Made by a program: the position numbers and the translations under genes. The notes beneath the pieces are model-generated. The model worked only from the letters and a program-made list of their open reading frames with translations, was not told where the DNA came from and did no database searches. Source: Haplodiscus bocki (taxonomy: Eukaryota). Taken from it: 64,000 bases of DNA. Shown here piece by piece: positions 2,291 to 52,814 of this stretch. The stretch is from the NCBI GenBank assembly GCA_965655095.1, contig OZ296649.1:27094001-27158000 (forward strand). The letters are read 5' to 3'. Position 1 is the first letter of the stretch. The number at the start of each line of letters is the position of its first letter.

Positions 2291-2689
2291 AAAGATGGAT
2301 AGGACGCGCCCTATGAGGGAAGAAACGGACGGAAAAGCTGTCTTTTTCCCGCCAGAGTTGGCATACCGACTTTGATTGACTAGTGATGTAACTACTTTTC
2401 TGTAATCGTACTGTGACTTGGCATGTCAACAATCATGTTTCCTTCCAATGAAGGGAACAAATTGAAAAAAAAAATTTATCATTTTTCGAGAGTTCGGACG
2501 ATAATAACCCCTATATTTTCACAACAATTATTGAAACTGTTAAAACAAGTTGATTTTCCTTCTTTAAAAAGACAATTCAGTATGAATCGCTGTTTATTCT
2601 TTTTCCCGTAGAACGTGGCAATTTTCAGAAACATTCGAAAACTTGCCGCCCTTAGCAAAGAAATTTGTGAGAAACATCCTAGGAGTAAC

Positions 2690-2992
2690 ATGGCACAAAA
2701 CTCAAATGTTCCCAGATGACAAGAGGACTATATAATTCAAGTTTCTGAGGAAATTGAGGGTAGAGTAACGAAGAAGCTGTCCCAGGAGTTCAGTTGAAGG
2801 GAGAGACGCATTTTAGGCGCACTACCTTGTCTCGATGACTTCTTTCTGAACCCGCTAATTCTGGGCTAATCCGGAGACGTCCCGGAACACACTAGGCACA
2901 AACCAAGGAACGAACCAGGATGACTCCGAGGGTGATCCTCATCCTGAAGCGAGTGTCTGTTAGAGTCAGATTACACGAAACTCTGGCCCAGA
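2690..2992 (+). mobile_element. Fragment of the 5' ORF of an LTR retrotransposon family (other copies at 33300-33720 and ~44540-44680, minus strand)
   Basis: Reads QEDYIIQVSEEIEGRVTKKLSQEFS..RRILGAL..LDDF. The minus-strand copy near 33600 reads PKINEEYITQVSEQI...RLLGAESKLDEF. Confidence 0.55.
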
Positions 2993-3000
2993 AAACACTT

Positions 3001-3845
3001 ACTACAACCGGCTACCACCGACATATTTTGCGCCTTCTCATTTTCGTAAAGAATGTTTTTAAAAGATGAAAACGTTGTTTTTCGAAAAAACATTATTTTT
3101 TCATCATAGTTTCTAATTTTTCCCAACGTTAAAAGATTTTTGATATTTTGCCAAAAAACATCATAAATAGGGCGGAAGACATTTTTAGGAAAAAAACATT
3201 TGGTTTGCATTGTACAGCAAATTTACCACCTTTAGCGATTTCGAATGAAATTCAAGTTTTGTTTTCGAGGAACCCATTTTTTTTTCAAAAAAGACCAAAT
3301 TTTTGTTTCAGCCGCGGCAATCTTGTCAATTTTGGCAATCTCGGCAGTATTGGAAATCTCGGCAATCTTGGCAATGTTGGAAATTTTAACCATTTTAGCC
3401 TTTTTGGCATTTTTGGCCATTTTGACTTTTTTGCCATTTTGGCTATTCAGGCCACTTTGGCCATTTTGGCCACTTTGGCCCTTTTCGCCATTCTGGCAGT
3501 TCTGCCCTTTTTGTCCATTTTGGCCATTTCGCTTTTTTGGCCATTCTGGCCATTTTGGCATTTTTGTCCATTTTTGCCATTTTGGCCATTTCGGCCTTTT
3601 TGGCCATGTTGGCCATTTTGGCCACTTTGGCCATTTTCGCCATTCTGGCCATTCTGGCATTTTTGGCCATTTTGGCCTTTTTGGCCATTTTGGCAATCTT
3701 GGCAAATAAATTTCACGACGACCCGAGTTAACATCGTTTTTAGCGCGAGCTCAAATGGCAAACATCGGGTAAGAAAACGCACCTATTTGAGAGGAAGATT
3801 TTGCTTTCCATATTCTAAAGAATATGTCGCAAAATAATAATAAGG
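3001..3845. mobile_element. Non-autonomous dispersed element (copy 1, with an internal 9-bp array); copy 2 at 35733-36242
   Basis: Shared left end ccggctaccaccg...ttttaaaagatgaaaacgtt and shared right end tggcaaacat.gggtaa.aaa..gcacctatttgaga...gcaaaata.taata with 35733-36242. Confidence 0.7.
3316..3705. repeat. 9-bp tandem array (TTTTGGCCA)n, about 43 units
   Basis: Directly visible. The unit has no stop in any frame, which produces the stacked WPF/GHF/LAI/NGQ/MAK/KWP ORFs in the ORF track. Confidence 0.95.
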
Positions 3846-4431
3846 AAAACTAGTGAGGGTAATAATTAACTGCTTGAAGACATGCATGTTTTCTAATATT
3901 TTGAATGTTCGTCGCGGTATAGTGAAAGGCAAAACAAAAGGAAATGTTCTTGTTTCTTACTGCACTCTTTGATGTTTTGAACGACTACGTGGCGGCTCTG
4001 GAGTTGATGACAACCTGGTTCTGCCTCCACTGCCAGCACGTTTTAAATTCTTCTTTAGTAGGATGTGCTATGTTGTATTAAACGACGCTTTTTTGAGCTG
4101 TAACACCTGCCTTCATACGAAATGTTTCTTCATTCTCCATTTTTTGTTTTCCACCTATTAGCCTTAGCAGCAGTGGATGCAGCCGTATAAACATTCAAAT
4201 CAGTTCTGGCTTCACTCCTTTTTAATTTTCAAACAATGCGAAATACTGTTGGTGTAATCTAGATCCAGTTACACTGTTACGCAATCTTATAGTGATTAAG
4301 CTGAAACTATAGAATGATTTCATAAACTGCTGCAGCATCGTGCCATTCATTGTTTCGAAATCCTTAGCATAGTTGTTGACTGTCCTGTATTCATTAATCA
4401 GTTATTTCATTACTAACATATACTTGACAAA

Positions 4432-4656
4432 ATGGCAGAAGCCGTTAAAGTTATCGTGCGGTGTCGACCGATGAACCAACGTGAGAAAAACTTGGGATGT
4501 GCCGAAATAGTTTGCATGACTTCAGGCATACAGTGTGCGATTGTCAACCCGGAAAGTCCAAACGACCCGCCCAAAGACTTCACTTTCGACGGTGCTTACT
4601 TCACTGACAGCACCACGGAACAGATTTATAATGACGTCTGTTTCGAACTTGTCGAG
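4432..4656 (+). CDS. KIF17: Kinesin-2 (KIF17/OSM-3-like) exon 1
   Basis: MAEAVKVIVRCRPMNQREK...PPKDFTFDGAY...TEQIYND..FELVE, then a phase-0 GT donor at 4657. Closely matches the KIF17 N-terminus. Confidence 0.93.
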
Positions 4657-5439
4657 GTAACTTTTCTTATTTCTATAAAGGGGGCTAATCATTATTAATT
4701 TTTTATAAAGACAAATTGGCTATTCCCTTCAGCCACCATGTCTTTTTTTCGAAAATTTTTCTTCATAGTGGAAATTAGAATTTCAAAAAAATAACTAAAA
4801 TATTAAATATCACATATTACAGATTCTGACTACCTTTTTATGTTGCTATTGAGAAACAACGCTTGGTAAATCTCAATACTCATAATAATCAGAAAATGGA
4901 GCCAATGAAGTCTTGTCAGAACTAATAGAAGGAAAAAAAACTTTCATTTTACTTGAAAAACACTGAATTACCTCAGATTTAAAAAAATCCTCTGGCGATG
5001 TGAAAAAGCAATATACAAATTACGTTACATTTGGCTGAAAAAAAAGAGTTTCTCGTGAGAAGGGTTTTCGTGAATGAGATCTTGTCCTTGAGTGTGCAGG
5101 GAATTTTTATGAAGTTTCGAAAAGATTAATGTTTTTTTTCCGCACCGTTTCATCGATAATTGTATCCTTAAGTGAATGAAGCAAAAGCCAAAGCTGCATC
5201 AGTTTCGGAGCGATTGAAAGAAGTCTGTCCACTAAGTGTTGTCAGAGACTGCACAGTTAGAAACTCAAATTTTTAAGAACTTTTATTGATTTTATACTGA
5301 ATAATTTCGTGTCCTCTATCTCTGTGGACATCCTGTCTGATCCGAAGATTGTGTATTGAAACCGGCCATGCCCAATTATATCCTGTGCAAACGTTGCATT
5401 TTTAACGTTACCAGTGTGTCAAAACAGTAGTGATTTTGA

Positions 5440-5694
5440 TTAAATGAAAGCCTGGGCAGAAATTCGACAACTTCTGAACTTATTTTCTCGAAGCACATTG
5501 GTTTTACCAGTAAAACAGTATAAATAGAAGGTTTTTAGAATTTCCATTCCAATAATATGGATATATACGATGCCGCGAAACCGAATGCCGGGTGAGTTGA
5601 CAAAAATTTCCTCCAGGCCCGGATTCGAACCTGTGCAGACGACGGGTTCGAAATCTTTCGCCAGACGCCTTATCCACCCGCCCACCGCTCACTC
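5440..5694 (-). mobile_element. tRNA(Ser/Leu-type)-derived SINE or tRNA pseudogene
   Basis: Minus strand has an A-box-like GTGGGCGGGTGGATAAGGCG and a perfect B box GGTTCGAATCC (5621-5631), with long variable-arm spacing. Acceptor and anticodon stems do not pair. An AT-rich body follows; the 3' end is uncertain. Confidence 0.6.
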
Positions 5695-22801: not shown

Positions 22802-25166
22802 CTGAAAACAAGCTCTTTTTTTCTTACTCCTCACTCTTGCTTCTGTTCAAACTGATTGGGCTTCTACCATCGAAGCCGCAACGAATGCCGACGATCTTTT
22901 TGAAAAAGGAATTTTATTCAATGAAGTCAGTAAAAACTTACTGACAGAAAAGTTTATTCGCGTAGTTTTCCTTGTACCATTTCCGACATAGGACTTTACA
23001 ATGAAGCTGGACGTTGAACGAATGATTCAACAACCTACCAGTATGAAGAAAACTCCTCTGCTTTTTTGCCCATTGAATTTATCAAGCCAATTTGCGACGA
23101 ACACTTCTGGACTCAATGTCCATTGGATGTTACATCAGATTGATAATGAAATTTCACAGCGCAACCAGATTTTGCGCTTATTCGTAACGAAACCACTATG
23201 TTCCTAAAGCAGCCTCAGCCTACTAAGTCTACTCGCCAACGTCGCGGCGCTGGTGCCGGTGTCGGCCTAGCTGCCCTTGCCACTGTTGGACTTCCCGGTG
23301 GGGGACTTTATGTAGGTGGTTCCGCTTCTTGTGGTTTGAAAGGGATTTTTGGTAATTGCCAAGAAAAATCCAAAACAAATGCGGGAAATGGCCGCTGCTT
23401 CGCCGATTTTCAAAATTCTCGTTCTGATTATGTTACGTAATTTATGACGAACACCGATGAAAAACTCTTTCTTGTCGAAAATAAACTAGCGGCTCTTAAC
23501 GCTATTCAATCCGAAATGGCCGCGACCCAAGAGAAGAATTGGGTCATCATTCAAGAGCAATTGGCTAATTAAGAACAATTTTTTCATATTTTACGTGACT
23601 GTGATCAACTTTTATTCGGTAACCAGCAACTTAACTTCAATTTTGATACCGTTTCTTCTTTACTTTATATGATTCATGCCAAGGTGGGAAATTACTGTTC
23701 TGCTTTGTTTGCTTTTCGCATGGACATTTTAAATTCGATTCCTGTTTTGCTCAAAGGACTTTTGCCGATATCGCTTATTACTATGGAGTGGCTCCTAGCG
23801 ATCATGGATGATGTCAGTCTTCGGAAACCAAAAGCTGAAGATCGCTTCACTGTTGCTCTACCGGCGAGTGATCTATTGTCCTATTTTGATTCTCGCTTGC
23901 TCGTTGACGCTATTACGGTATCAGAAGGACTCCTATTGACAATTAACATACCGCCTGCTTCGCAGCAAACTGTTTTTACACCTTTTGAAACAACACGTAT
24001 TCCGATGCTTTTTCCAGACGATCCTCAGACGGCTCTTACGTGGAACATCGAAGCTCCAAATTTAGCTCTTTCTGAAAACAAACTTGAATCGTCCGTCTTA
24101 TCTGAGGAACAGTTTGAGCACCGCCTCGGTTCGTCGAAGTACCGAATTTGCTCTGATGCTTTCCAACGCAGATAGGACACCCTTATTGCATTGGAGCAAT
24201 GTAGTTTTTTTAATCCTATTGATGCACTAGCTGTTTTTGAAACTACTGCTATCACCTTACCTAGTATTGAACAAGCTACGAATCATGGTTTTGCTAACTG
24301 GCTTATTACATCTGCAAATGCTGATTTCACGTTCCGTGGATCACCATCATTAGCAACATCATCCTCTTCAAGATCATTTGCTGGTTGTCATATTTGCAAC
24401 ATTACCTTTGCTTGTGGAATGCAAATTCACACGGGACATATAATCACAAGATAAGATCTTGCTTCATGTTCGACCATTCCGGCAATTAAATTGCAATTAT
24501 CTTTGCCGAATCTGCTTGAATCGTTGATCATGCAAGTCCCCCCGTTAGACGAACTACCCTTATATACATCGAAAGCAATATCAGGAGTGACTCTTGGAAA
24601 AGCGGTGCGAAAGAACCTTAGAAGCAGTGTAACCGTCCGCCAAGTCAATCAATTGGTGGAAATAAATCGTCCGTTCGCACAGGACATGAAACTTTTGAAA
24701 CCCTCACTGACCCGTGAATTTAATCAATATGTACCTTTCAAGATGTCTTGTAACTTGACAGTGATGGTTGGGTTTCATCGTCTCAACAGTGGTACACCTT
24801 GTTTTCTTGTATATTTATCACAGGTTTAATCTTAGAGACTGTTTTTTACCAAAATTGTTGACAAAAAATAGCACTATTAGACCGGTGCTTCAAGTTCCTG
24901 AGGAATGTCCACTCAACCTTTCACAAAAACCTTCAAGACGTTTTCTCCTGATTAGCCATAATCCAAAGTAAAAATCAGAGACACCTCCGAAAGTACCTCA
25001 AAAAACCTCTATTCAAGCCGCGTTATCTTTATCTGCTGCCTCCGAACCCTCTTATGCTAAAACACCACGGTTCGTTCTAACTGACACGACGCCCAAACAG
25101 GAAAATGTTTATGCATCAATTGATAAAAACCGTAACACCGAAACGATGACCATATGGTTGACTTGA
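22802..25166 (+). pseudogene. Envelope-like glycoprotein (class I fusion protein architecture)
   Basis: Signal-like KQALFFLLLTLASVQT; furin site RQRR (23234-23245) directly followed by GAGAGVGLAALATVGLPGGGLYVGG; heptad-like LFLVENKLAALNAIQSEMAATQEKNW; Cys-rich ectodomain; TM-like VMVGFIVSTVVHLVFLYIY; cytoplasmic tail. Several stops and frameshifts. Confidence 0.8.
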
Positions 25167-25868
25167 AGTCTCATGTTCACCATAATAAATGAAGTCATTG
25201 AAACCAAAACATGCATTGTTATCAAAATTTTTTGCTGTAACAAGTAAGTTAGAAATGTAGTAAATTTCTGGCTAAAAAAACGCCGCAAGACGAGATGAAT
25301 CGTCACTCTGGGACTGGCACAACAACTAAGTCACAAGATGATCACGTGACACGTTTTGGGCAATTGTAAAATTTGTTCTGGCTTTTTCTTCAACTTTTCT
25401 ATCTACTTATCTGGGAACGTTTCGGTTTCATTCTGTCTTTCTGTGAACTCATTTCCATTCATGGATATCACTGGATTCTTCCAATCGGATAATGGTCCTT
25501 TTTCCACAGGCCGGAAGAGTTTGAATAGAGGAAGTGTTTTACACTGAAACAGTGCCTCAGTCCGGGACAGATGAAATTGAAACTTAGATTCAGAATTTAT
25601 TGACAATTTTATAAACCTCAAACCTTTTTAACATTTTAAACTAACCCTATTATTGATTCATAATGTTTATTTCAAATTGATTGAGCTGACCACAAAAAAA
25701 ACTAAGAAGAGAAATAATTCAATTCTTTGAAAGGTGCTTCCAACTAACCAAAAAAAAATTGTGATCCACGCATCCAAGAATCTTGTCCGTTCACCAATAA
25801 GCTGCTGTCACCAATAGTGTAAAACAAAACTTAAACCTGAAAAAGAAGTTTACGACTTGAGTCGCTAG

Positions 25869-28586
25869 AAATTTCAGCATGAGGCAAAGTCTATGTTCAC
25901 AACAACATAACCACGGTGGTTTTCACTTGCGCACGCAACTCCAGGCTTTACAATCGGATGGTGAGTGGGCGCTGTTGGTATTCGTGTCAAGAGTCTAGTG
26001 CAGGTTTATCTTTCGCTATGTGGAGAGCCTCCGCGGTTAACAGCCATTTTTGGTTGTTGCTCGCCGCGAGTACATCAACTGTCAAATCTTGATTTCCGTT
26101 GCAGCCTTGAAGGTGTTCACCAACCGACGCCGATGTCTTTTGTTGCTCAGAGAGTCTTGTTGTAAGATGTCGTACCGTTTGGCCGACATAGCAGGAATTG
26201 CATCCCAAACACAATTTTTGCAAACAACCTTACTTCTGAGTTCCTTCGGAATCGGGGCCTCGAGAGTTGGCTAGGCTGTCTTAAGTTTCCTTGTCGTGAA
26301 AATAACTGAGCACGTAGCTTTTTTCTGAGTTTGGCGGAAGATTGATAAGATATTCGGCCTCGAATCACAAATAATTTTCTATTTGGACGCGCTTTTCCTT
26401 GGTGTTGCAATTTGGTGTCTGGCTGTGGCCTAGCCTCATCCAATAATATCTTCTCGATCGTGTTTCTGATAAGAGGGGAATAGAAGGATGGAGGATATTG
26501 GTTGGTTTCAATGCATCTGGTGAGCTTGTTTACAGCACTGTCAAATTTGGCCCAATTCGACGTAGTGTGGTGGATACGGTGGATTGCGCCCGGTGTATTA
26601 CGGTGGTACGATGTTTCGTTGTATATTTCGTGGGAGCACAAGCCTATTAGGATAGGTATACAACTGTGTCAGAGGGCTTTGTGTACAAGGATGTGCTCAA
26701 CTTGTTTTGGCTGCGGGTAACCAGCAAGTCGAGAAAAGCAAGTTCGATGTTTATATCGTGCTCGACTGTGACTGCAAGGTTCGGATGGAGCGCGTTAGCT
26801 GTTTTGAACAATTTCTCAACATCGTCGAGTTTTACTGACCGTATTGTGTCGGCCACAGAACGTGCAAGTAGCTTCGCTGGCTCAGAAGGAGGTTCGATCG
26901 TGTTCGAGTGGGGTGCTGTTTGCGACCATCCGCACGTCCATTCGCCTTCTTTTAATTTTTGAAGTTGAAATCGAGCGGCTGGTGCATTGGTGGTGAAACC
27001 AAACACGGCAACTGCAACATTGAACGGAATTACCGCAAAGTTTCCGCTGCATGCCCCGCATGGAGAAAGCACACCTGCCACGACTGGAAAAACTGTCCCG
27101 GGCCTATCACTCGGCATGAAATTTCTTCTTCTGCAGTTACATTTTCGAGCTGTTTCATCCTAATGTTTGCAAGGTAACTAGCAAGTTTTGACCCCATCGC
27201 TAATCCGTCCATTTGCCTGTACCAGGTTTCACGACAAAGTATGTCTACGTTTCTGACCGCTACGGACATGAGTTCAATAAATTTTTCCTTCGAGAAGTCA
27301 ACGGTGGTGGCCCTGGCGTACACCAAATCAGCAGTCATGCTTATGGATTCCTCAACCGGTACGCTTGTGTACAGCGATTTTACATCTAACGATATCAGCA
27401 CATCATCAACTTCCAGTGTTGTGGACACTAGCTCATCCGTAATCTTGCTTCAGGACGTTTCTATCTGTGCCGCAAGTAATTTCTACAACCATTCCGCAAG
27501 AGCATTAGTATGTGGCTCATCAATTTTTTTAGCCTGTTGTCGAACTTCTCTTCAATCTTGATTGTAATGGGCTTTCTCGTGGTGCCTGAAAGAGAAGTGT
27601 TTGGCTTTACAAACTACCGGTGAGTAAGTACTCTGTCACATCTCTTTAAAAAGTCATCCTCTGTCATAATGCAGTATCCGATGCCCTTATCAAGAGGTAC
27701 CGCATTCGAGCCATTATTCTTCTTGTAAGCCACTGTTTTGGTGAAGGCACGATCCGAGGACTGCCGTTCTGCCAATTGGACAAACCAGTTGGCAATATCA
27801 TTGAGATCGTTACATACGTCAGCATCCGTGTTCTGAGACAGGAAGTCCATGTCAGCTAAGATGTTCATATCATCAAGTTTGTCTCGAATAGGGTGTTTGG
27901 GACCGAACGACATTAGGTCCAATGCAGATTGAGGAGGGTTGATGTCACACATTATTCTCACAGTGCTCTTGATGTTCCGTAGCGGTTTTTCCTGTTTCGT
28001 AGCACGCTCCTGGAGTTTCTTCTGATGTCGTGAGGAAACCTCACCATTCGTAACACGACAGCGGTAGCGGATGAACAGGATGAAAGTTGGCAACAACAAA
28101 ACTGGACAGTTTTCCTTGAGTGCACTCCGAACGTCGTTAAGTCGGTTGGTTGCATGCTCAAATATTCTGCAAGCCTTGCCCAATTCAGCCTTCAAGAGGC
28201 GTCTCTGGAAGTCCTGCACAATAGCGGGCTCGAAACAGCTGTTTTCGGGGATCTGGAATCACAAATTTTTAGCTCACATTGTTGATTAAACACTTTTCCC
28301 GGAAAAGCGATGAGCAGCTCAGTAATTTGAGTCTTCTCGATGCACTTTCGGTATGCCAAGAAAAACTTCCACGCATTGTATAGGAGCAATGTCTTTTTCA
28401 GAAGTCGAAAGGCAAGGAATATTGACGGATGTTTACTTGAAGAACAATGTCAATGAAATTTTTTTGAGTTTACACTCATCATCAGCAAAACAGTCTGAAA
28501 ATACCCAAAAAAATCAAGCATGAAGTTAGTCAAATCAGTAGGGAAAAATTTTAGCATGAGGTGAAGTCTATGCTCACAACAACATA
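25869..28586 (-). mobile_element. Penelope-like element (RT plus C-terminal GIY-YIG endonuclease) bounded by a 41-bp direct repeat
   Basis: LMSFGPKHPIRD, VPLDKGIGYCIM, LISLDVKSLYTSVP, YRQMDGLAMGSKLASYLANI, ARSVADTI (eroded RYVDD), LAFLDLLV, LYTKPSDT, NQYPPSF; EN CLGCNSCYVGQTVRHLTTRLSE...EALHIAKDKPALD. 25869-25909 and 28546-28586 are 37/41 identical. Confidence 0.9.
26926..27063 (-). other. PHD finger inserted within the Penelope RT
   Basis: With two frameshifts reads PCGAC..-GNSVQCCSCRVWFHHQCTS..-LKEGEWTCG: C4HC3 spacing with the conserved W-x-C. Confidence 0.7.
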
Positions 28587-30410
28587 GCTATTCGTACGTG
28601 TGACACTTGTAATAAATTTTCTTGAGAATCAACTGAGTACTTCAAATTTGTGTTCAATTGTTTCTTCAGTAGTGTTTGTAGCGCCACGGCCCTTTTAAAA
28701 CCAGTCAGCCTTCTTCGATTTTCTCAAGTTTTCCTTCGGCGCAAGTGTTGCGAGTTTTAGCTTCGGCTCTGTGCTAATGATTTGAAATACGGAGTTTCCA
28801 AATTGTTGTTTAGCAAAAGAGAAGTTTTCGAAAACTAACCGTCGAATTGCGCGCGTTGCAAATTACTTTCTTTTCTTGGTACAAGAAATTTCGTTGCAGT
28901 GGCATTAAAAAACTATCCTATTTTTTCTGACGGATTTTTTTTGCTTCTTCCTTCGAAGTCGTTTCTCCCGGGATTTTACTGCATTTTTCTTACTGCAATG
29001 TGGGGACTTGTGCAGAGAGCGAGACGTGCCAGTTCTTACCTTCCATGCGAAGTTTCGTGACTTGTTTTTGAAATAAAAGAAATTACTTCGCGTCTTTTTT
29101 CGAAGCTGTTTTTCTCCACGACAACTGGTTGGATTGGGGCTCTCAAATGCTCATGAAAAATTCTCAAAAGGGTCGCCTGTAGAGACACTGGGATACCTTT
29201 GCTGTGATTTTTTTGTGCTTCATTCAATTTTCCTCAAGTATTTCACTTGCGTCCCTTTTTAGAGGTGATTATGTCAAAGAGTTGAAACCAGCAATGAAAT
29301 GCTTCACATGGGGATTCTGATAAAGAGCAGAGCCTCTTTTTTATAGGTTTCATGAAGATTGCGTAAAATATTTGTACTTGTTATTTCGAAATGAGAAAGT
29401 TTTTCTTTGCGTCCTTTTTCAAAGTTGTTTTTCGAAGACTAGTTTTTGGTTTGTGGCCGTCAAGTTTTCCTAATTCCGCGATCCAAATAAAAATTGAAGA
29501 AGAGCTGGAAAGACCTTTTTAAGCATGTTTTTCTGCATTGCCTTTTCAGTTGAATCTTTTTGTCTTTGTTTTTTTCTTTTCATATTGAAATTAACGACTT
29601 TCAAAACTTTTCTTCTGATGGATATTAGTCACTGCCCTTCCTCAACTTCGTCCTAAGTGTGTGGCAAGCGAAGCTTCCCCTCTGTATTCAAAATTATTTT
29701 TCCATTTCTCCAGAATTGCAATGGTGAAAAATGCTGAATTAGAGGGTCTCGAATTTTGGAGTTGTCCGGTTTCGATGAACCAAAAACTATTGTAATCTTA
29801 TCAAAAATCTCAGAGTTTTGCTTTTACAGTTTTTTTTCACCTGTTACTTATTGAGATTTTGAGCCTTGGAAACCTTGAGTAAACAGTCGAAAACCTTTTT
29901 TTGTCAGGAACTTTTTCATTTTCGGGTTGTTACTGTGCAGACTTCTAAAACATTGGGCAGAAAAATCGCATAACTTGAAAAGACATTTTTTACATATCAA
30001 ATTTTTGACGATCGGAGCCTGTGACAGAAATTTGCCTCAAGTGAAGGTTTTTTGGGATTCCCGATCTCACCAAAGAAGTTATAATGTGTTGCGAAATTTC
30101 GATTCGCGTCTGTGCTAAAATTATTTTCAGTTGAATTTTTCAGATGGCGTGAATTTCGCTTACTTTCTCTTTTTTGACGATGTTAGTTTTCGCGCTTTTG
30201 TGCCTGGTTTAGTTAATGCCGAAGTCCTTTTCGCCTTGCAGGGCTATGCTTTGTCTTGAAAATTTTATCTGGGAATTTTGCTAGAAAAAATTAAGGTAAG
30301 AATCTAGTCTTGCCCTAATATGATTGCCCTAATCACGGTGTCAAATAAAACATCAAAAAGCAGGAAGTATGATGAACTGGACTGATTTTCAGAAAAGTTG
30401 AAATTTCTAG

Positions 30411-30696
30411 AATGTTCTGGAAGGATACAATGGCACTGTGTTTGCGTATGGACAGACAGGGTGTGGGAAGTCGTTCTCCATGCAAGGCATTGTGGACCCG
30501 GCCACTCAGAGAGGCGTCATCCCTCGGGCGTTTGATCACATTTTCGAGGCTGTCTCAGTAACCAAAGACAAGAAGTATCTCGTGCACGCGTCCTACTTGG
30601 AGATTTACAACGAACAAGTGCGAGATCTCTTGTCTAAAGATGCTAAAAGACAGCTTGACTTGAAGGAACATCCTGACAAAGGTGTCTATGTCCATG
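30411..30696 (+). CDS. KIF17: KIF17-like exon 2 (P-loop)
   Basis: ttctag acceptor; NVLEGYNGTVFAYGQTGCGKSFSMQG...SYLEIYNEQVRDLL...LKEHPDKGVYVH; phase-1 donor gttagt. Confidence 0.95.
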
Positions 30697-31999
30697 GTTA
30701 GTACCTCATTTTCATCATCTCTCAAATTTAACTGTACCTAATATCGGTACTCTAATTTGTGACACCTAAACTAAATGCTGGCTGTATTGCCCTTAAAAGC
30801 GGTTCTTTCATTTCATCAAAAGTTTTGGTGAAGACTCAATGTTCAAGGGCCCAAGGGACATTTTAAAAAAAATAGAGCTTTCCGTTTGCTCATCGTATTT
30901 TCAAATTGGTCAGTGTGTATTTAGTCGGCGCTTTCATACAAAAAGACGACTCCTGTTGTGTCTTTGTTTTCAGGCTTAAAGTGGTAGCATTCGTCTGTCT
31001 AAGGTCATTTTTTGGTATCTCCCGGATACTATTACCGTTGAGTTCGTCTAATTTTGCGCATCAAGGTTTATATTTGCCTTCGTTCGCACGCGAGTGCCCT
31101 AGTTAGTTCAATCGAGTTTCGAGTGGCGGAACCTCGGTTATTCATGTCACCTTCGACTTGATGCATGCAAAGTGAATCAGCTCTTTCGGTGGATGCTGAG
31201 TCATTCAAATTTTCTCTGATGTTTTGTCAGTTTTCTTGCATGATTTGAACTCTCCCCAAAACTCTGCAGCTAAGCTAAACTTCAAGTGGAATTCCCTTCT
31301 TTTCAATATCGAAGGTGAAGATATTGTTAGAACGAGGTCATCCGATTTTTCAGGTTTGGTAAATGTGGTTATGATGTAAATCCACAACTGATAATACGTG
31401 TCATGAGTTGCGTGACAGTAATCTAACTGAGAGTTATATGGTTGATTGCCCAGCTGGGTTGCTTACTTTTTACTGTATTTTTGGTGAGACCGCTAAGGTG
31501 CTACATGAAATAGAGACTTTTTGTAACTACAGGAAAAGATTTGCTTTTCATTTTTTTTTCGTTTTTTGGCTACTTCAAAATTTATTTTGAGATTCTCTGA
31601 AGTTCTTTTTTGAAAAAGACCTTTCAGTGGAGTTGCCATTTCATCGATTTCCGCTTTTTATTGTCTCCAAAATCGTTTTCTCAGTTCTCAGTAACCACCA
31701 ATAAAAATTTGCGGATTGAGCGCTTCATCAAAATCAAGATGTATTTGTGATGGATCTTACGCAACAGATTTGAGCCTTCTACTACTTCAATTAAAAAATG
31801 ATTAGCTATACGAAAAAGTACAACGGTTGACTATGATCGACATTCAAAATTGTTTTCTTTGGCGACTTGCAATTCAATCTTCCTCCGTGAGTGCCCAATC
31901 AAATGATAAATAAATCGGAAAAGATCTCATAGATCAAATTTGGACCTTCTTTTTCCTCCGTTAATGAAAAAATGCTGATCAAAAATACCAAAAACACGA

Positions 32000-52771: not shown

Positions 52772-52814
52772 TTAACAACATGTTTCGGTTGTCGAACAAC
52801 CATCATCAGGTCAA
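52772..52814 (-). ncRNA. Minimal type I hammerhead ribozyme (Penelope-type)
   Basis: Minus strand: TTGAC-CTGATGA-T-GGTTGT-TCG-ACAACC-GAAA-CATGT-T-GTTAA. Intact core, 6-bp stem II, 5-bp stem I (one G-U), palindromic ACATGT stem III, GUU cleavage triplet. Confidence 0.8.

Follow-up and report, generated by a model that had tools for sequence, protein, structure and literature searches.

A lineage of Penelope-like elements with a predicted Pygopus-type PHD finger between reverse transcriptase motifs B and C

A 64,000-nucleotide stretch of the Haplodiscus bocki genome (GenBank assembly GCA_965655095.1, contig OZ296649.1, positions 27,094,001 to 27,158,000 of the forward strand; hereafter the window, in whose own numbering positions are given) contains a decayed Penelope-like element (PLE) on its minus strand, from about 28590 to 25845. 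Between motifs B and C of its reverse transcriptase (RT), this copy carries the remains of a PHD finger. Comparison with relatives from other assemblies indicates that the insert is a trait of a whole PLE lineage and not a one-off event in a single copy. By profile and predicted fold, the finger is of the Pygopus type, and it appears to be under purifying selection as strong as that on the RT core. We assign a probability of roughly 60% to the joint reading of these results, in which a lineage-wide Pygopus-type finger in the loop between motifs B and C would serve as a tethered docking module, most likely for the tail of histone H3.

A broken PHD finger in the window element

The element is read across three minus-strand frames. 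Motif B (DGLAMGSKLASYLANIRMKQLENVTA, 27209-27132) is followed by a long insert, beyond which stands the motif C side (LLARSVADTIRSV, 26871-26833), and the Cys/His pattern in between is spread over three frame pieces: PCGACSGNF (27063-27037), GNSVQCCSCRVWFHHQCTSRSI (27034-26969), and LQKLKEGEWTCGWSQ (26964-26920). A PHD-like insert between motif B and an eroded motif C had been reported in a first-pass annotation, made by a model from the letters of the window alone, and this is confirmed. The same annotation had counted about 88 codons between the flanking motifs; the long gap is real, and from KQLE to ARSVADTI it measures 278 nt, or about 92 codons. The cores of motifs B and C are 26-34 residues apart in PHD-less PLE relatives versus 94-108 in insert-bearing ones. 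The insert and its parts are listed here.

26866..27143, minus strand: whole insert (upstream linker, PHD finger, and downstream linker) between the motif B helix and the motif C strand
26926..27060, minus strand: PHD finger proper, with seven of the eight C4HC3 ligands; family profile 41.9 bits; Pfam PHD; best match Pygopus
27060-27058, 27051-27049, 27019-27017, and 27010-27008, minus strand: PHD ligands C1, C2, C3, and C4
26995-26993, 26986-26984, and 26934-26932, minus strand: PHD ligands H5, C6, and C7
26928-26926, minus strand: the C8 position, now Trp (TGG); the related locus L001 has TGC

Relative to L001, the window has indels of -1 (near 27132/27131), +2 (near 27039), and -3 and -2 (near 26969/26968), so that three frameshifting indels and a 3-bp deletion interrupt the insert as a whole. 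The first-pass annotation had to bridge two frameshifts, both of which are in the finger itself; the linker upstream of it contains a third. We read the broken finger with X at both of its breaks only and scored it against a profile hidden Markov model (HMM) of fingers taken from 17 other elements. The bridged read reached 41.9 bits (E 8.8e-12) and the single-frame piece 28.9 bits against the same profile. The next best of 2181 six-frame window segments scored 9.0 bits and the best of 2000 shuffles 6.6 bits, and the pattern is thus well beyond chance. With Pfam PHD, the outcome was mixed: the window frame piece alone scored 19.7 bits (E 8.9e-4), below the cut-off of 24, whereas the relatives P0018 (26.3) and P0024 (24.3) lie above it and P0009 and P0011 (about 19) below. 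An ESM Atlas feature search on the insert region returned scores below 0.8 and was uninformative.

The insert marks a lineage of Penelope-like elements

When we searched proteins by word index with the 156-aa piece of the window, only two fragments came up, both in one assembly, because of the length window of that search. One of these, the sister copy P0002, comes from the same assembly as L001 and is 56% identical; it has linker, finger, and ARYVDDII, the last at the place of the window's ARSVADTI, in one frame. In the DNA of L001, motif B lies in the frame of P0002, with one stop codon between motif B and the start of P0002. An exhaustive HMMER search with P0002 gave 838 matches, among which about 30 clusters, at most 50% identical to each other, have the insert at the same site, and more than 50 distinct intact fingers stand at this site in proteins from other assemblies. 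Long intact open reading frames (ORFs) run in the order RT, finger, GIY-YIG (P0186, P0187, P0185, P0184, P0188, P0178, and P0154). A profile search added full-length insert-bearing proteins of 826-891 aa (P0196, P0197, P0200, P0202, P0203, and P0307), and clusters of full-length PHD-bearing proteins have up to 242 members. Alignment with PHD-less PLEs shows the insert as a clean addition to the loop that joins the helix behind motif B to the strand entering RYVDD; it consists of a finger of about 50 residues, an upstream linker of about 10-35 residues, and a downstream linker of about 10-25 residues. The first-pass annotation had named sister copies lacking the insert, and ligands out of frame with each other, as signs that it was wrong. 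Neither turned up: the insert is present in sister copies and distant relatives alike, and their ligands share one reading frame.

To place the insert on a phylogeny, we computed a maximum-likelihood tree on 235 RT columns with the insert removed and seven short rows (P0054, P0016, P0017, P0015, P0014, P0024, and P0042) left out. A branch with support of 97/93 has all 23 insert-bearing rows on one side, and these are nested among PHD-less PLEs. Because these rows group together, one change suffices for the gain of the PHD finger, and most simply the tree suggests that the lineage acquired the finger once.

Some families of this lineage that carry the finger look recently active. P0307, an 873-aa ORF, is identical at four loci in two assemblies. 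The corresponding elements (L009:1801-5947, also in L010, L011, and L012) are 4147 bp long, 99.9% identical, and set in unrelated flanks. Their 320-bp terminal direct repeats are identical within L009, where we tested the element against itself, and 99.4-100% identical between copies. Upstream of the main ORF, this element has a 212-aa ORF with no Pfam match. A local alignment score of only 34 led us to reject this ORF as a tandem remnant of the main ORF.

As to hosts, XP_063722202.1, a protein of the acoel Symsagittifera roscoffensis, is among the 220 members of the 90% cluster of P0199. The source of P0183 is a marine metagenome contig from Tara Oceans, and most other relatives come from ENA assemblies whose contigs span hundreds of kilobases. 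A 5'-truncated member of the same PLE family in L002 (4001-4924) begins at RT motif D and has a long interspersed nuclear element (LINE) fragment (Exo_endo_phos_2, RVT_1) downstream of it. Two departures from the usual finger were seen. In P0189 (713 aa, PHD lineage), the first CxxC pair appears to have been lost and the remaining finger kept, which may represent a degenerating or repurposed variant. In the P0197 and P0355 family, the last zinc pair reads C-D-R-H in place of CxC/CxxC, giving a C4HC2H variant.

The finger is predicted to be of the Pygopus type

When the finger profile was run against all PDB sequences, the top nine matches were Pygopus (E 3.6e-11 to 2e-9), followed by the plant PHD finger family protein 1we9 (1.1e-7) and Alfin-like 1 (1e-6). 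An AlphaFold model of the finger alone, from which zinc is absent, had a predicted local distance difference test (pLDDT) score of 85.3. Its top 12 Foldseek matches were Pygopus PHD fingers, with template modeling (TM) scores of 0.66-0.71 and root mean square deviations of 1.7-2.6 A; nearly all of the 50 PDB matches listed, and all of the high-probability ones, were PHD fingers. Precomputed PHD_Pygo (PF27108) matches are also on record. The Pfam, profile, and fold matches thus bear out the claim of a true PHD finger between motifs B and C, and they assign it, by sequence and model, to the Pygopus type.

The full AlphaFold model of P0186 (pLDDT 87.8, predicted TM score 0.79) is a right-hand RT that matches the RTs of TERT, retrons, group II introns, R2, and LINE-1. 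In this model, the finger (about 211-265) has a pLDDT of 82-88, and the flanks at 201-210 and 266-273 fall below 50. Because the confident finger sits between low-pLDDT stretches, it is predicted to form a separate module on flexible linkers. The loop between motifs B and C lies on the outside of the palm in general RT architecture.

The Pygopus PHD fingers (PYGO1/2 and Drosophila Pygo; PDB 2vpe, 2xb1, and 3zpv; PMC2726290) are the best match both by profile (E 3.6e-11) and by fold (TM about 0.7 at about 30% identity), and they share with the PLE fingers the frame PCGxC...V...[SA][IV]xC..C..W[FY]H..C...W.C. In the K4me pocket of Pygo, the change W366E abolishes binding to methylated H3K4, and V350E and A356E cut it to less than 3% of the wild type (Fiedler et al. 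2008, PMC2726290). We compared these positions in 51 distinct PLE finger cores chosen by their ligand pattern. The equivalent of W366 is Trp in 49 of 51 cores, that of V350 is Val in 48, that of A356 is Ser, Gly, or Ala in 49, and that of I357 is Ile or Val in 40. The PLE fingers differ from Pygopus in that the last ligand pair is usually CxC (35/51) and not CxxC (16/51), with three cores ending in His, in a shorter loop 2, and in that most of them are basic. Nothing in them points to a BCL9/HD1 partner. The context differs as well, since the PLE finger is embedded in an enzyme and the Pygopus finger is C-terminal in a transcription cofactor.

Selection on the finger

Ligand retention was scored in 29 insert-bearing rows that were picked by HMMER score and not by pattern. 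Each of the eight ligands is kept in 23-29 of the 29 rows, and the Trp before the His and the Trp before C7 are each kept in 28. The majority residue in these rows has a frequency of 0.94 at ligands, falling to 0.45 elsewhere in the finger and to 0.29 in the upstream linker. We also estimated dN/dS (omega, the ratio of nonsynonymous to synonymous change) by the Nei-Gojobori method, using two natural ORF pairs. In the comparison of P0186 with P0187, the finger has an omega of 0.054, against 0.27 for the linkers and 0.04-0.07 for the RT and endonuclease; these values are rough because dS is near saturation, with the ordering of the regions still clear. For P0178/P0183, dN is 0.09 in the finger, 0.37 in the linkers, and 0.16-0.21 in the RT, the only enzyme domain compared. 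The downstream linker has an omega of 0.11-0.27. On these rough estimates, purifying selection holds the finger as firmly as the RT core.

These results decide against the view that the window shows a one-off capture after insertion, or a chance Cys/His pattern, in a single decayed copy. The window pattern is visible only after the frameshifts are bridged, and its single-frame Pfam score is below the cut-off, as this view would have it. It is refuted by the sister copy and the dozens of diverged intact ORFs from other assemblies that carry the same insert in frame, by the purifying selection on the finger, and by the shuffle control (41.9 against 6.6 bits), and we leave it almost no probability at all.

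A proposed docking module in the motif B-C loop

We propose that the finger, on its flexible linkers, loops out of the palm and serves as a docking unit in its own right. It would hold an extended peptide, most likely the N-terminal tail of histone H3, by means of the conserved Trp divider, a pocket floor of Val and a small residue, and the edge of a beta strand. The complex of RT, endonuclease, and RNA would in this way be kept on nucleosomal DNA while GIY-YIG nicks and the RT primes from the nick, and integration would thereby be biased or stabilized. The full form of this proposal, an animal PLE clade whose RT palm loop bears a histone-tail reader that chooses or holds nucleosomal targets during target-primed reverse transcription, is tentative, and we would sooner bet against it than for it. 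To our knowledge, no other polymerase has a chromatin reader embedded in its catalytic domain. If the proposal were true, acidic and basic variants of the finger would read different marks or ligands.

Several points weigh against reading the lineage-wide finger as a docking module for the H3 tail. The acidic lip of Pygo is not conserved: none of the 51 PLE cores has the EVND motif, Asp stands at the D352 position in only 4 of 51 (Arg in 16; Tyr, Phe, or Trp in 17), and only 13 have an aromatic residue at that of Y341. The cores are mostly basic, with a median net charge of +5, a maximum of +10, 30 of 51 at +3 or more, and 7 at -2 or below, which fits nucleic acid and fits a basic H3 tail poorly. 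Because the set was selected by ligand pattern, it is biased to intact fingers. The near-saturated dS makes the selection estimates coarse. The PHD-less rows in the tree are a sample, and the finger may have been lost later inside the clade; a host taxon is named for one cluster only. Chromatin reading and insertion targeting are functions that we infer for the finger. The placement of a reader next to the active site, as the first-pass annotation put it, holds along the sequence only; the AlphaFold model of an intact relative shows a separate module between low-confidence linkers.

The charge of the fingers keeps a different ligand in serious contention. In this alternative, the finger is a module for nucleic acid or for an acidic partner, tethered next to the palm, where it would hold template RNA, target DNA, or a host factor in the course of target-primed reverse transcription. 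The strongly basic majority of cores would suit such a role, as would the replacement of the acidic Pygopus loop (EVNDDQD) by usually basic residues (TRRGY, SRKV...) and the Arg at the D352 position in 16 of 51 cores; the PLE family of the window is likewise basic. Set against this, the surface Trp divider and the pocket floor of Val and a small residue, which are features of the Pygopus peptide pocket, are nearly invariant, 7 of 51 cores are clearly acidic and Pygo-like, and 17 of 51 have an aromatic at the lip that would fit a methyl-lysine cage. Canonical PHD fingers also rarely bind nucleic acid, as far as we know. We consider a nucleic-acid or acidic-partner module unlikely, and somewhat less so than the remaining alternative, in which the finger has no external ligand and acts within the enzyme, by zinc-stabilized folding, PLE dimerization, or gating of the palm. 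The insert stands about 20 residues ahead of the catalytic Asp pair, and the downstream linker is somewhat constrained (omega 0.11-0.27). PLE hammerhead ribozymes are thought to act as dimers, which is compatible with a dimeric particle. A purely structural or regulatory role is nevertheless improbable: the sequence and length of both linkers vary, and disorder is predicted for them, the conserved positions fall on the ligand-binding face of Pygopus and not on the hydrophobic packing face, and PHD-less sister PLEs function without a finger. We retain a tethered docking module for the H3 tail as the preferred reading.

Relation to known PHD-bearing elements

In the literature that we searched, no PHD insert between RT4(B) and RT5(C) of a PLE has been reported, in line with the first-pass annotation, to which the architecture at this position was unfamiliar. 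The only precedent found there is the Chlamys group, and the green-algal PLEs with a PHD finger to which that annotation pointed are thus real. In Chlamydomonas, five Chlamys families carry a PHD insert, which lies between RT2a and RT3(A) in some and within the N-terminal endonuclease in others (PMC8557442). Like the window lineage, Chlamys PLEs are single polyproteins with a PHD finger spliced into a catalytic domain. Unlike it, they have an N-terminal GIY-YIG without CCHH, a CxC motif, an IFD, and algal hosts; the window lineage has an animal-type host and a C-terminal endonuclease with two core Cys and falls outside Chlamys by the membership criteria of that group. The PHD finger of the window lineage lies between RT4(B) and RT5(C) and marks a whole clade, whereas in Chlamys it is found in five families. 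Craig et al. 2021 cite CR1 and Rehavkus as other PHD-bearing transposable elements and mention none in canonical animal PLEs (PMC8557442). The PHD fingers of CR1-type non-long-terminal-repeat elements are also borne by a retrotransposon (precedent in PMC8557442), but in a separate ORF1 protein and not in the RT.

In L005, a LINE (2386-5569, minus strand; endonuclease and RT, 1048 aa) adjoins a PHD-bearing PLE. Precomputed matches to PHD and PHD_Pygo are recorded in the upstream ORF of this LINE, which is 434 aa long and extends past the end of the locus. P0055 (L007:5207-5941) and P0147 have two tandem Pygopus-like PHD fingers that share 45-47% identity with the PLE finger. A 2A-like ...GDVERNPGP motif directly precedes the first finger of P0055, and in L007 an RNase H ORF lies about 4 kb downstream. 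A Pygopus-like finger from a LINE ORF1 is a possible donor of the PLE finger, a domain too short for a reliable tree.

A functional analogy for the mechanism is found in the chromoviruses (Ty3/gypsy), in which a chromodomain on the integrase fuses a chromatin reader to the integration machinery of a retroelement and targeting has been shown experimentally. The chromovirus chromodomain differs in fold, in the enzyme that bears it (the integrase C-terminus), and in element class. The IFD of TERT and of Naiad/Chlamys PLEs is, like the PHD finger, a lineage-specific insertion inside the RT core (PMC8557442). It lies between motifs 3(A) and 4(B) and is helical and integrated into the RT, whereas the PLE PHD would be an autonomous zinc finger on flexible linkers. 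Judged against the literature searched, what is new is a clade of canonical PLEs with a C-terminal endonuclease that is defined by a Pygopus-like finger at a new RT position. With it, PHD capture by PLEs reaches beyond a few algal families and takes in a diversified clade associated with animals. The integration of PLEs and their choice of target are poorly understood, and a conserved, selected reader-type domain in the RT offers a testable handle on both. The tolerance of the RT motif B-C loop for a whole-domain insertion is also relevant to the engineering of RTs with built-in targeting modules.

Anatomy and surroundings of the window element

The window element is a Penelope-like retrotransposon whose GIY-YIG endonuclease is C-terminal; this copy has suffered an internal deletion and is dead. 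In a sequence with zero N, it has an N-terminal DKG motif followed in order by motifs A, B, C (eroded), D, and E, the arrangement of a PLE. Outside the insert, its parts are as follows.

28522..28586, minus strand: upstream copy of a 65-nt direct repeat, 77% identical to 25845-25909 and 2677 bp apart from it
27617..28219, minus strand: N-terminal PLE domain, an open stretch of 201 codons with the DKG motif PLDKGIGY (27697-27674)
27430..27616, minus strand: RT1-RT2 region, interrupted by stops and by a 142-bp deletion (junction 27521/27520), from DNA alignment with L001
27132..27428, minus strand: RT fingers/palm piece with motif A (LISLDVKSLYTSVP, 27398-27357) and motif B with its helix (27209-27132)
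26650..26871, minus strand: RT motif C, eroded from YVDD to SVAD (26859-26848), then motifs D-E (AFLDLLV 26739-26719, YTKPSDT 26685-26665)
26229..26641, minus strand: RT thumb and linker region in a different frame (NQYPPSFY 26503-26480), collinear with P0003, P0009, and P0186
25990..26228, minus strand: C-terminal GIY-YIG endonuclease, with VVCKNC, a frameshift, then CLGCNSCYVGQT...EH, and the end ...EALHIAKDKPALDS
25845..25909, minus strand: downstream copy of the 65-nt direct repeat, pairing with 28522-28586

The N-terminal domain is collinear with the N-terminal parts of P0183, P0162, and P0307, and a Pfam search found no family for it in the window. The 142-bp deletion takes out the L001 stretch that encodes the KVHK...PLRPV motifs (RT1-2); these are present in L001 and in relatives. 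With Pfam RVT_1, the RT piece of the window scored 19.7 bits (E 7.7e-4), below the cut-off, which relatives reach (e.g., P0018 at 30.4 bits). Compared with L001, the window copy has lost RT1-2 to the deletion, carries the four insert indels and several stops, and is without its catalytic motif and one zinc ligand, and we call it dead several times over on these grounds.

The GIY-YIG core of the window holds two Cys that are part of the CCHH motif, and the C-terminus of intact relatives reads VVYxIxCxGCxxxYVGQT. The intact relative P0009 scored 21.8 bits with Pfam GIY-YIG against a cut-off of 22.6; precomputed PF01541 (GIY-YIG) matches are found in P0201 and in PHD-less relatives such as P0190. 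By eye, we saw no CX2-5CxxC linker finger upstream of GIY-YIG in the window, P0186, P0009, or P0307. The absence of this linker finger and the presence of the two CCHH-motif Cys inside the GIY-YIG core characterize the Penelope/Poseidon type as against Neptune, Nematis, and Hydra (PMC8557442), and by these features the endonuclease looks Penelope/Poseidon-like. The element anatomy and the intact relatives thus agree with the first-pass description of an animal-type PLE whose GIY-YIG is C-terminal.

About 1.8 kb from the PLE, on the plus strand at 30411-30698, an exon encodes the P-loop region of a kinesin motor (...GYNGTVFAYGQTGCGKSF...). The PLE may therefore lie in an intron or the upstream region of a kinesin gene; because no upstream kinesin exons are recognizable between the PLE and this exon, we make no claim on its insertion context.

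We searched for hammerhead ribozymes and terminal repeats as well. No hammerhead reached the Rfam gathering score in the window, L001, L003, L004, or L006, and none was found at E up to 1 in window 25000-29500 or in L009 1700-6100. Across the whole window, no Rfam family reached its gathering score, including at the hammerhead candidate 52772-52814. This absence is a weak negative because minimal PLE ribozymes may escape the Rfam models. A plain scan for CUGANGA...GAAA gave one unconvincing bare CUGACGA...GAAA string at 2062 in the L009 repeat, with no helices shown. Direct repeats of the kind that form pseudo-long terminal repeats (pseudo-LTRs) were found both in the window, as the 65-nt pair, and in the young relative in L009, as the 320-bp terminal repeats of 100% identity. 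The 65-nt pair flanking the window element is likely a pseudo-LTR or the remnant of a partial tandem.

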